A stretch of 63,306 bases of DNA, counting the filler, from Lenisia limosa (lineage: Eukaryota; Protista; Breviatea), in the NCBI GenBank assembly GCA_001655205.1. It is 12 parts of 12 records of this genome, joined end to end, with 100 filler letters (N's around TTAATTAATTAA, not from the genome) between each part and the next. Parts side by side here need not be neighbours in the genome. Positions count along the whole stretch, not along the records: positions 53,064 to 57,347 come from LPNZ01009782.1; 11 more parts are not named here. One strand, written 5' to 3'. A program made the position numbers and the translations under genes. Positions 52,964 to 57,613 of the stretch are shown here, in pieces; the stretch's first letter is position 1; each line of letters begins with the position of its first letter. The notes under the pieces are model-generated. The model did no database searches, was not told where the DNA came from, and worked only from the letters and a program-made list of their open reading frames with translations.

Positions 52964-53640
52964 NNNNNNNNNNNNNNNNNNNNNNNNNNNNNNNNNNNNN
53001 NNNNNNNTTAATTAATTAANNNNNNNNNNNNNNNNNNNNNNNNNNNNNNNNNNNNNNNNNNNNAAAAAAAAAAAAAAAAAAAACAACATCAAAATAAAGT
53101 AAGTAACATATTTTGAGCAGTTAGAAATTAAAACAGAGTACTGGAATCTCCCAATTGCTTGCCTAGAAGATGAATCCAGAGTCCAGAGTTAACTTGAAAG
53201 GGGTTGTGTACGGTGTAAGTGTTTGCATCTTAGAGTTGTATGGAACTAAACAATACAGTACCGTCACCTTTTTCGATAAGACAATATCCTGGGAGCTCTT
53301 TGTCTGTTGCCTATCATCCACAAAAATTGCAACCTTGAGGGGATATCTGAAGTCTTCGCGACACACGTACGTTTTATTTCGTCCCGTGCCTTTGCATCAT
53401 CTTTTTTTTTTGATCATATTGTTTATCTTATATTTTGTGCCCCCATATGATTTATTTTCATATTGATAACCAACATAGAAGCTATCACGAAACCAGTCAA
53501 AAACTCTTTGGCGACCAGGCGGCTATTGTTGTATCCTCCAATTTCTTTGTGGGAATTGTCAAATATTGTTTTATTATTGCTTAGTAGTCTATGATTGCAT
53601 AACTTTGTATGTGTTTGTGTCCTACTAAAAACTAAAACAG

Positions 53641-54480
53641 GAAGCTCCTCTACTGGAAACCGAGGTCCGAGTTCCGCACACCATTGAGGAATTGGAACAA
53701 TCCGGTAACGTGTTGTCTCCTACATCAAGTTGGTATTAATGTTGTTTTAGATGCCGATTTACCACTGGACTTGGAGGAGGACAGGTTAGTTGACAGTAAT
53801 ATTTTTTGGGAAACATTTCTGCCTGTTATGTACCAAGCAAATAACACTGCAACCCAGGTGTTTGACTCACTGGTTGGCTCCCCCGCCGACCGGATCCCAT
53901 CTGGCCTTGCTCGTCACCGAGACGATGTGCCATGTGCTGAGCAGCCGGGGCATGCGGAGTATATGCACTTGCCAACGTACTGCTCTTTGCATACGCCCAC
54001 ACGCTTTGCCATTTCTTCTCATTCCAGCAGGCGACCGCAATAGTCATGATTGGACTTCATGTAAGCGGTTACATGGCAACATAAGAGAAAGAAGGCACGA
54101 GTTTTTACATTTTTGTTGACCGTTCAGGTCCAGGCCATGTCAATGGCAGCCCCTCTTTTACAGTTTGAAACATAGATTTTGATTAGTATTTTTTATTTGC
54201 AAGCTTAGTTGGGCTTTGTTTCATATATTTTCCAGTTTTACTCACCCCCCCCCCNNNNNNNNNNNNNNNNNNNNNNNNNNNNNNNNNNNNNNNNNNNNNN
54301 NNNNNNNNNNNNNNNNNNNNNNNNNNNNNNNNNNNNNNNNNNNNNNNNNNNNNNNNNNNNNNNNNNNNNNNNNNNNNNNNNNNNNNNNNNNNNNNNNNNN
54401 NNNNNNNNNNNNNNNNNNNNNNNNNNNNNNNNNNNNNNNNNNNNNNNNNNNNNNNNNNNNNNNNNNNNTTCTGATTAAAG
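53641..54480 (+). CDS. Hypothetical protein exons; family B tail at about 54200-54254 in its intron
   Basis: EAPLLETEVRVPHTIEELEQS|VGINVVLDADLPLDLEEDR with GT-AG introns; TTGGGCTTTGTTTCATATATTTTCCAGTTTTACTCA-C10. Confidence 0.45.
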
Positions 54481-55329
54481 TATATGCTGCGTCAACAACC
54501 CATTTATGATAGACCATGTTAATAAATCAAGCGAATTTGACTCTTATCTTAGTGCCATTCCAGAACGGTATTTTCGCCCATTTATGTGTAATTTTCTTTC
54601 ATTTTTGGCCCAATTTGTCTCGTATTCTTTACTCAAATGCCTCTTGGTTACTCAAGAGTGGAAAAAAATCAAATCTGATGATGCGAGAAAGTCTTTACTT
54701 TATCGCAGGGACATTCTAGGCCCATAATCAGTGTTTTTAATGTATTTCGCATGAAAAATTGAAGTACCATGAAGGTGGTATTTTGCATGTATGTGAAGCT
54801 GCTTTGCGTCTTGCTGAACGCCACCTCTCTGAAGCCCAAATCAACAATTTAGGGATTTGTGAACCTCACGGTCGCAAAGCCGCCAAATCATCGATAAATA
54901 ATATAATAATAATATCGATATTTTACCAGTCTCTTTCGCCATGATATATGTTAGGCTATAAAAACTCACCGCCGAATCTTTATGATCCTAGTAATAATAG
55001 AGATTCTACTGCAGAAAAACAAAACTGGATTCCCAAATTGAACAAAAGTTGTCCCTCAATCAACCTCTCTCAACTCCCAAAACGTATTTTTTTTCTGGAC
55101 AGGCAATTGGGTGGAAGTGAAAATAATATTAATAATTGAAAAAGATACATATAAAATGAAAGAAATAATCAAAAATAATACAAATGCAATTGAACAAAAT
55201 ATAAAAAATGGAACACTAATAGTATCAAAAAGACAAAAGGACAAAAAAGGAGGACCAATAGAATAAATTGTTTCACCCTTCAAAAAGACAAAAAAAAAGA
55301 CCATCATTAGAATGCATTGTTTCACCCAC

Positions 55330-56700
55330 CGCCTCGCTAAAGTCGCAATGCCGTTGAATTTGGGCTCCCAGTCAATAGGGGTGTCCAAGGCCATTGCTTC
55401 TCTTTCGATTATGGGAACGCCTACTGCCAAACGGGCGAGAGTCAAAGAAACCACATCCACTGCGGCGGCGTATTCGTCCTGATGCTCGTAAAAAATGGAT
55501 CAAATACGTGTATTACATTCCTTTTGACATTAGATACTCCCAGGTTCTTTATGGGTATTTGTAATTATCGTATCCCAATGTATTTCTTTCCTTAGATTTT
55601 TTTCAGTGATATTCTTTTGCTCTCAAAAAATAAATACATTCTTATCCCCATGTATAGTATATTTTATGTATTTTCTCGTTCTTTAATAGTACTTGTTCAC
55701 TATTATCTCAGCAATTTCGACACCATTTGCTTACAGGATTTTCAGAGTGCATTACAGCCACTGATCCCCACAAGATTTCCGGGTATTCGGGAAGCTGGGG
55801 GGGGGGNNNNNNNNNNNNNNNNNNNNNNNNNNNNNNNNNNNNNNNNNNNNNNNNNNNNNNNNNNNNNNNNNNNNNNNNNNNNNNACGAGCAAAAAATCTG
55901 CAGTTCTTAAAAGAAAGCTTGAAAGAAAAGGAACACTCAAAAATGAAAGAACGAAAAGAGGCGAGGAGTCTCTAACTCCATAGAACTACAATCCAGTATA
56001 GTCTCCAAGGATTTTCCCAAGAAATTCAGTCTTTATTGGGACCGAAGTGAGCCACCATATAAAGCCCACCTTTCGGTACGAAAAAAGCAAGGGGTTTTAC
56101 TAGTGCTTCACTTATGTTCAAAAAAAAAAAAACTCGGTGCAATATCGATAGTTTTCGAGGATTTATCGATAAATTCAGTCTATTTCCGAACCGAAGTGAA
56201 GCCTTAGGTTAACTGACCCACAGAGCCCTCATTGAACTTACCTTTTCAGGGGGAATTTCACAGGCCAAGTGATGGAGCGTCCTCATAACTTCCAGGGAGA
56301 ATCGCTGAGGAGCAGTTGGCTGGGGGAGTAAAAATGGAAAAGAGTTTAAACAAAAAAGCCTGAATCAACTCTGTTGGCTAACAACACACGAGGAAAACAA
56401 CAAAACAAAGCTCAGGCTAGAGGCACCGCATCCCACCAGAAAATGTTTTTATGAGACAAAAAAGAGAGAATCAAGTTTGTTGGCTTGCATTTGCCCCCTC
56501 CCCNNNNNNNNNNNNNNNNNNNNNNNNNNNNNNNNNNNNNNNNNNNNNNNNNNNNNNNNNNNNNNNNNNNNNNNNNNNNNNNNNNNNNNNNNNNNNNNNN
56601 NNNNNNNNNNAAATTACTTACTAAAGAGGGGGAATCATGTACGATGAAGGGGTTATACAGGGATAATTATGTTAAGCTAGGATGTAATATTTGGTTGAGA
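55330..56700 (-). CDS. Hypothetical multi-exon protein
   Basis: Phase-0 exons 56242-56319 (PTAPQRFSLEVMRTLHHLACEIPPEK) and 55735-55794 (LPEYPEILWGSVAVMHSENP), each with GTAAG donors; HQDEYAAAVDVVSLTLARLAVGVPIIERE... Confidence 0.6.
56101..56206. mobile_element. Family A MITE (other copies or remnants at about 56010-56052 and 56785-56869)
   Basis: TAGTGCTTCACTT...AACCGAAGTGAAGCCTTA. Confidence 0.85.
56320..56485 (-). repeat. Family B full unit (56320-56439) ending in the splice acceptor CCCCCAG, preceded by a degenerate tail
   Basis: Reverse complement: CTGGTGGGATGCGGTGCC...TTAGCCAACAGAGTTGATTCAGGC...TTTTCCATTTTTACTCCCCCAG|CCAACT... Confidence 0.9.
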
Positions 56701-57613
56701 TTATTTAACGAGTTCATTAGGATGGTGTACAATACTCCAATGACAGAACAAGTTGCATAATTTGAACCAATAATTTGCCTATTCTAGAGCTTCATTTTCG
56801 GTTGCAAAAGACTGACAAAATATCGATTATCGAGGATTTATCGAGAACTTAGTTTTTCAGTAAGCTCTAAATAATTCTCATTAATTGCCTAATGCATCCC
56901 CCCCCCCCCCNNNNNNNNNNNNNNNNNNNNNNNNNNNNNNNNNNNNNNNNNNNNNNNNNNNNNNNNNNNNNNNNNNNNNNNNNNNNNNNNNNNNNNNNNN
57001 NNNNNNNNNNNNNNNNNNNNNNNNNNNNNNNNNNNNNNNNNCTGTAGTGTTAAGGAAAGAGTCGCGGGTGAAGGTTGATAATAGTTACAGATTGAATGTT
57101 GTAACAAGGACAAGATTATCATTAGAGTGCAAGGGTTGTAAGTTATCCACAGTTTCACTGTCACTAACATCCCAAAATCCTATTATCATCATTATTACCA
57201 TTATCATTACATTCTTCATCACTATCATCATATATAGCTACCCCCACCCCTTCTGGTAAATTTTATGGTATCCCTCTGTATTTAATTGCTCTTGTTCAGA
57301 AAATCCCTCTCTTCCAACCCCCCCACTATCAGCCACAGCCCAGTTGANNNNNNNNNNNNNNNNNNNNNNNNNNNNNNNNNNNNNNNNNNNNTTAATTAAT
57401 TAANNNNNNNNNNNNNNNNNNNNNNNNNNNNNNNNNNNNNNNNNNNNCTATGTACATGTCATCTGGTTTTTGTCTAGTTTAAAAGTGTGTTGCTCATGTT
57501 GGTTATTGCTTGTTTTTTTGTTTGTTTGGAGTTCCAGATTATTCATTCGTGATAAGTACCTTTATGCCAATATTTTTCATCAAAAATTCGTTTACTCCCC
57601 CCCCCCTCCCCAG

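Follow-up and report, generated by a model that had tools for sequence, protein, structure and literature searches.

An abundant repeat of Lenisia limosa whose 3' end serves as an intron 3' splice site in one gene and probably remodels acceptors

In one gene of the breviate Lenisia limosa, the 3' end of an abundant repeat, here called family B, was shown to be the 3' splice site of an intron, and the family probably remodels acceptors. Our best explanation, which is based on one full copy in one gene and to which we give roughly even chances, is that family B is a non-autonomous, retroposon-like repeat of about 120 to 135 nt whose 3' terminus serves as the 3' end of introns. The window is the whole stretch of 63,306 nt that was analysed, and the genuine DNA examined here is the piece at positions 53064-57347. 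Two public runs from one 2016 study contain this DNA, one made of DNA-like contigs (X1) and one of poly(A) RNA (X2), and an independent ENA contig of 2,534 nt (L001) was reached through a bacterial-style open reading frame of the window (P0001). In a base-by-base comparison, blocks of 306, 619 and 1,067 nt of L001 were identical to the window, while a fourth block (56611-56910) differed slightly at one edge; three gaps of the window were closed by L001, with true contents of 52, 124 and 47 nt in comparison to the 78, 107 and 131 N given in the window.

The features that carry the main finding are the following.

56320-56439, minus strand: family B copy 1, almost complete at 120 nt with its terminal AG (56321-56320) counted, from sequence and alignment
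56320-56334, minus strand: 3' splice module of copy 1, TTTTTAC-TCCCCC-AG; the RNA exon block starts at 56319 with zero mismatches
56242-56319, minus strand: exon E1, 78 nt, from the RNA contig and the open frame
55735-55794, minus strand: exon E2, 60 nt, from the RNA contig and the open frame
55330-55478, minus strand: exon E3, 149 nt, from the RNA contig; X2 contains all sampled words

An RNA contig of X2 (record 10, 993 nt) matches 56319-56242, 55794-55734 and 55477-55330 with zero mismatches, and its canonical reading, with GT-AG borders and one G that fits on either side of the junction, places the second and third exons at 55794-55735 and 55478-55330. The three exons form one continuous open frame of 95 codons. 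Because this contig joins the exons from 56319 onward into one open frame, the AG directly behind the tail of copy 1 is an acceptor in use in poly(A) RNA, and the intron holding copy 1 is precisely spliced out, the RNA joining exons exactly at that AG. The RNA depth is zero elsewhere in these introns, except for other RNA contigs lying on a second repeat, family A, at 56145-56207. The preliminary description had placed a repeat copy at this position and had proposed that its tail supplies the 3' splice site; both points are borne out, as the copy is 120 nt long, lies on the minus strand and ends directly at the exon start.

Copy 1 begins with CTGGTGGGATGCGG, which is the start of the consensus given earlier, minus about 5 nt, and its final 15 nt are TTTTTACTCCCCCAG, with the exon beginning at the next base. 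This module consists of a yUnAy motif resembling a branch point, then a C-tract, then the acceptor. Two further copies were found in the piece.

56440-56485, minus strand: family B copy 3, 5'-truncated and starting with AGCCAAC, from pattern, alignment (z = 10) and repeat D5
54198-54254, plus strand: family B copy 2, a fragment from the 3' part that runs up to a gap with TTTTACTCA-C10, from alignment (z = 6.8)

Copy 3 stands head-to-tail with copy 1, directly upstream on the same strand, with 25 of 30 positions identical over 56456-56485 and a local alignment z of 10, and a pattern of 24 specified bases occurs at exactly two sites of the piece, those of copies 1 and 3, against 0.00 expected by chance. 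Copy 2 matches at least the 33 last nt of family B (z = 6.8); the RNA depth is zero over 53064-54207 and this copy has no RNA-supported exon behind it. It lies on the opposite strand and may be an antisense or intergenic copy. The C-tails differ in length (C5, C10+ and C12), and the 5' part is absent from both copy 2 and copy 3. No tRNA was found in family B by ARAGORN and no Rfam family at E <= 1 in the window piece and L001, in agreement with the earlier statement that a Pol III box is lacking, as a Pol III head, a tRNA and an Rfam match are all absent. Terminal inverted repeats had likewise been reported missing, and this holds as well: the termini CTGGTGGGA and TCCCCCAG are weakly complementary, pairing over 8-9 nt, and are the only such pair, and the terminal fold was no better than that of shuffled sequences (z = -0.95 and -1.45). 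Patterns of family B and family A had no match in the metagenome, genome and viral contig collections searched.

That family B is present in many copies was observed from the DNA-like contigs. The summed depth of X1 over 56353-56495 is 40,180 in comparison to about 30 on unique stretches, and over the repeat the summed DNA-contig depth exceeds that of single-copy DNA about 100- to 1000-fold, although summed depth does not equal copy number and a low-complexity stretch in the body may inflate the body figure. Three X1 contigs link a copy-1-like body with a copy-2-like tail, which is the layout of the consensus proposed earlier, and this together with the high summed depth supports the multi-copy family that had been described. 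The tail depths, estimated from bin means, are about 4,200 for the tail of copy 1 and about 5,400 for that of copy 2, so that the body is about 10 times deeper than the tail, the opposite of what pure 5' truncation predicts. The proposal of a constant 3' end with variable 5' truncation is upheld by the truncated copies 2 and 3 and by the tails of variable length, with the depth of the body as a caveat; the deeper body, together with its fusion to family A in some contigs, gives a hint that family B is modular.

The next intron of the same gene gave a second junction of this kind.

55795-55806, minus strand: E2 acceptor, made up of a C-run and an AG; 10 C beside the gap in the window, GTTTTACA-C12-AG in L001

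With the gap closed by L001, the intron before E2 ends ...CATTTCCTTCGTTTTACA-C12-AG, so that two consecutive introns of one gene end with TTTTAC, a C-run and a used AG; the preliminary description reports TTTTA, a C-run and TAG at another intron. The intron before E3 is single-copy DNA and ends TCCATTTTTTACGAGCATCAG (TTTTTTAC...CAG) without a C-run, and a candidate acceptor further upstream reads AATTACTTCCAG. All four acceptors in the gene, that of the single-copy intron included, have TTTTAC or ATTAC before them and then pyrimidines and AG, and 4 to 13 nt separate the motif from the AG in each case. TTTTAC fits the yUnAy branch consensus, and since it stands upstream of every acceptor, including that of an intron without the family B body, it is probably the general branch motif of this organism, as judged from the sequence of these four acceptors. 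For the same reason the A of TTTTAC is a more likely branch point than TTGAT (at -45), which had been named before. It follows that tail-only "copies" are inseparable from a generic 3' splice signal; the tail-only similarity of the E2 acceptor has z = 1.2-1.7 against copy 1, and the higher value against copy 2 (z = 5.4) is due to the C-run. C-runs were found only at element-like tails, and the other acceptors of the gene have none. The suggestion that the element brings its own branch point, tract and AG thus stands insofar as the tail works as an acceptor end, while the AG itself may come from the target or a target-site duplication (TSD) rather than from the element.

A possible footprint of the insertion was seen in the heptamer AGCCAAC, which occurs as the first bases of copy 3, inside copy 1 and directly behind the C5 of copy 1, where it gives the AG of the acceptor as well as the 5 nt with which E1 opens. 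The chance of a 7-nt match at two such places is about 0.01 when a slop of 3 nt either way is allowed. AGCCAAC may be a TSD, or it may be 5' microhomology left by target-primed reverse transcription (TPRT), such microhomology being typical of truncated TPRT insertions. The preliminary description saw no TSD; this 7-nt direct repeat, which flanks the unit of copy 3 and copy 1, is a candidate for one. The AGCCAAC repeat, the 5' truncation and the variable C-tail together suggest a retroposon-type insertion and fit the TPRT-like retroposon proposed before; the greater depth of the body over the tail does not fit pure 5' truncation.

The 5' side of the same intron depends on a candidate exon upstream.

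L001 681-770 (window gap 56504-56610): candidate exon E0, 90 nt, from frame and splice signals only
56504-56610, minus strand: assembly gap, really 124 nt, holding candidate exon E0 and bridged by X1 contig 6

Candidate E0 is open in phase, has an acceptor and carries a GTAATG donor, and in the last bin of the piece the RNA depth agrees with a preceding exon whose end is at 57327. Should E0 be real, 210 nt of intron would lie before E1, of which about 166 nt would be family B, and the 5' 44 nt of this intron are unrelated to family B. With this candidate exon, excising both copies leaves an intron of 61 nt (GTAATG...CTCCTCAG) whose AG lies 15 nt, or 5 codons, inside E1 and in frame. The first 15 nt of E1, CCAACTGCTCCTCAG, end in this second, in-frame AG, which may be the older acceptor; the acceptor may thus have been shifted upstream by 15 nt, without change of frame, through the insertion. 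The earlier idea that the element takes over the acceptor agrees with an in-frame older AG 15 nt downstream, the reconstruction with E0 being inferred.

Under our preferred explanation, the 3' terminus of family B would be a full 3' splice module, with the branch-point-like TTTTAC, a variable oligo-C and an AG at or right behind its end. When a copy lies in sense in the 3' part of an intron, the spliceosome would take this module and the first AG behind it, and the element would thus be turned into that intron's 3' end. At the present locus, a short intron of about 61 nt would have received, through a TPRT-like route and about 15 nt upstream of its older acceptor, first a 5'-truncated copy and later a full one (or else a dimer), leaving the 7-nt AGCCAAC duplication or microhomology, and the new module would have shifted the acceptor 15 nt upstream in frame. 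Antisense copies, or sense copies in the middle of an intron, would be selected against or would behave differently.

A stronger form of this explanation is that family B is a "half-introner", a retroelement family specialised for intron 3' ends that inserts in sense at or just before acceptors and carries its own branch point and C-tract, which we regard as less likely than not. Rather unlikely in our view is an ordinary intronic SINE- or MITE-like repeat, whose closeness to acceptors would be a by-product of short ancestral introns, of a tail that resembles a generic signal and of the selection of striking cases. TTTTAC or ATTAC before all four acceptors, the unique intron included, and the non-significant tail-only similarity are both in line with such a repeat, as are the plausible ancestral intron of 61 nt and the presence of another repeat, family A, in these introns. 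It accounts poorly for a used AG immediately behind the C-run at two consecutive introns and for C-runs being found only with element-like tails, and the preliminary description lists more cases in which 0-1 nt separate the C-run from the AG. A site-specific retroelement that homes to acceptors, with an endonuclease or a priming step targeting C-rich/YAG sequence and so fixing sense orientation and position without selection, would explain why the tail abuts the AG in both verified cases and why the flanking 7-nt repeat starts with AG, and the head-to-tail pair of copies 3 and 1 resembles re-insertion at the tail of an earlier copy. However, the native acceptors without the element show no C-run that could be a target, an autonomous partner or an endonuclease was not found, and just two junctions are seen, so that we consider homing quite improbable.

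The two remaining readings have lower probability again. In a true introner the full-length element would be a whole intron, with its 5' GT at CTG|GTGGGA and a 3' AG, that creates introns in exons, the present locus being nested or decayed. The 5' end of the element, CTG|GTGGGA, does resemble the used donors of this gene (GTGGGT and GTGGGG), introners which carry the 3' site and obtain the other from a TSD are known (PMC9860276), and family B would fill about 166 of the 210 nt of the intron if E0 is real; but the 5' 44 nt of the intron of E1 and nearly all of the intron of E2 are not family B, and the element's own GT is unused here, which leaves this reading very unlikely. We think it highly improbable that family B is a DNA transposon with terminal inverted repeats (a MITE) having short termini CTGG...CCAG and a 7-bp TSD. 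Although the fold pairs 8-9 terminal nt and a flanking repeat of 7 nt is present, the z-scores of the fold are not significant, the AGCCAAC on the upstream side belongs to the interior of the family and occurs inside copy 1 too, and 5'-truncated copies with a variable homopolymer tail are atypical for such elements.

The preferred explanation, a retroposon-like repeat whose 3' terminus becomes the 3' end of introns, can be set beside three known systems. Introners, described in Micromonas, Aureococcus, dinoflagellates and fungi, are multi-copy mobile elements in genes that are spliced out (PMC9860276, PMC12130899, PMC11282704), and some of them carry the 3' site and take the other site from a TSD (PMC9860276; PMC11282704). 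Family B is likewise multi-copy, and its copy 1 lies in a gene and is spliced out; one site may be carried and the other, or the AG, may come from the TSD or target. Sense copies of introners persist because they are spliced, which would be a further likeness. The key difference is that introners form whole introns, and surveys demand similarity at both intron borders (PMC12130899; PMC9860276), while family B coincides only with the 3' border; the intron before E1 has at least 44 unrelated nt at its 5' side and that before E2 is almost wholly unrelated. The functionally closest known cases are retroposon tails that serve as polypyrimidine tracts, as in the exonization of antisense Alu elements (PMC2330237) and in a canine SINE at the border of PMEL intron 10 and exon 11 (PMC7349775). 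There, as in family B, a homopolymer tail of variable length is the polypyrimidine tract beside the AG, but in those cases an antisense poly(A) is read as oligo-U, whereas family B lies in sense with an oligo-C and its own branch motif; moreover, the Alu and PMEL cases are sporadic and concern alternative or faulty exons, while copy 1 is a constitutive acceptor and the preliminary description claims a family-wide habit. SINEs and 5'-truncated non-LTR retroposons are, like family B, short repeats found in large numbers, among them 5'-truncated copies, and end in a homopolymer 3' tail of variable length; a short flanking duplication or microhomology and a modular body and tail may be further shared features. 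In contrast to SINEs, no Pol III head and no similarity to tRNA, 5S or 7SL was found in family B, its tail is made of oligo-C and is neither A-rich nor a simple repeat, and it has no known LINE partner.

It is known that transposons give rise to whole introns, as introners, and are occasionally exonized. If the end of one family routinely became the branch point, tract and acceptor of existing introns, this would be a separate route of intron evolution, by which acceptors are replaced, exon borders are shifted in frame and short introns grow, and repeats that lie in introns only in sense would be explained. Since introner surveys require similarity at both borders, such elements would be filtered out and may be more widespread than is known. 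Were the "half-introner" form to hold, splice sites would be shifted (here by 15 nt, in frame) and short introns lengthened, and the family would drive the turnover of acceptors across the genome while escaping, by their very design, the introner screens now in use.

Family A accompanies family B in this gene.

56141-56203, plus strand: family A, an ATCGAT-rich repeat in the intron after E1, depth 138,016, repeats D4/D6/I3

It also occurs at 56806-56850 and 54908-54938 and has the inverted arms CACTTCGGTTCG and CGAACCGAAGTG. Its summed depth of 138,016 is the highest in the piece and far above that of family B, and its ends, at 56141 and 56203, are break points of contigs (93 at one and 85 at the other). 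Some X1 contigs fuse family A to the body of family B, with joints at 56203->56363 and similar positions, and family A may represent a MITE or else a module that partners family B. Following one family A copy, a C13 comes after 45 nt.

Beyond 55330, the end of E3 on the minus strand, the RNA contig runs 318 nt into an exon or exons starting CGGAACCCTACAGG that are absent from the piece, and the 3' part of the gene lies either within a gap, outside the piece or on a different scaffold. Pfam gave no match for ten open reading frames, and no relatives were found for the open frame across the repeat, the open reading frame in the repeated region or the left-hand one. A 49-aa query from E3 matched only the window's own open reading frame and, spuriously, a coiled-coil golgin, and the gene has no recognisable relatives in these searches.

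Several observations concern the assembly. A homopolymer of C or G stands immediately before each of the four N gaps (C10, G10, CCCCCTCCCC and C13, at 54245-54254, 55797-55806, 56494-56503 and 56898-56910; three exact runs of at least 10 and one CCCCCTCCCC), and the gaps are thus assembly breaks. The C/G runs of at least 10 are far above what DNA of 39% GC should give. The gap before E2 was resolved as follows.

55807-55884, strand not assigned: assembly gap of 78 N, really 52 nt (L001 1416-1467), ending ...CATTTCCTTCGTTTTACACC

The sequence at the end of this gap may be either a family B tail-like fragment or a generic 3' signal. The stretch at 54494-54922 is repeated, with a depth of 400-2,300, and is present in RNA contigs on both strands with its pieces rearranged. 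L001 ends at 54740 within this repeated, transcribed stretch and an X1 contig ends in 54494-54922 too, so that the scaffold join near 54740 crosses a repeat and the scaffold may be misjoined there. The GC-rich stretch at 53830-54127, for which neither RNA nor a Pfam match was found, has a diverged second version in X1 with 5 substitutions and 19 gap letters, including a 10-nt insertion, and this second version is a paralogue or an allele. The piece opens with A20 (53064-53083), and A/T runs of 12-13 nt also flank family A (56120-56132).

In addition, G-runs were seen just inside the 5' ends of introns, at L001 42-64 (window 57326-57304) and 781-796 (in the gap 56504-56610). At L001 44-64, where the upstream exon has its donor, a family B tail in antisense was considered and rejected, as it is only 71% complementary and gave no BLAST match. 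The upstream donor reads GT-G7, and GGGGGAGGGGAGGGGG stands 20 nt past the donor of candidate E0; its GGGGGAG is exactly complementary to the CTCCCCC of the copy 1 tail, so that the two ends of the intron could pair.
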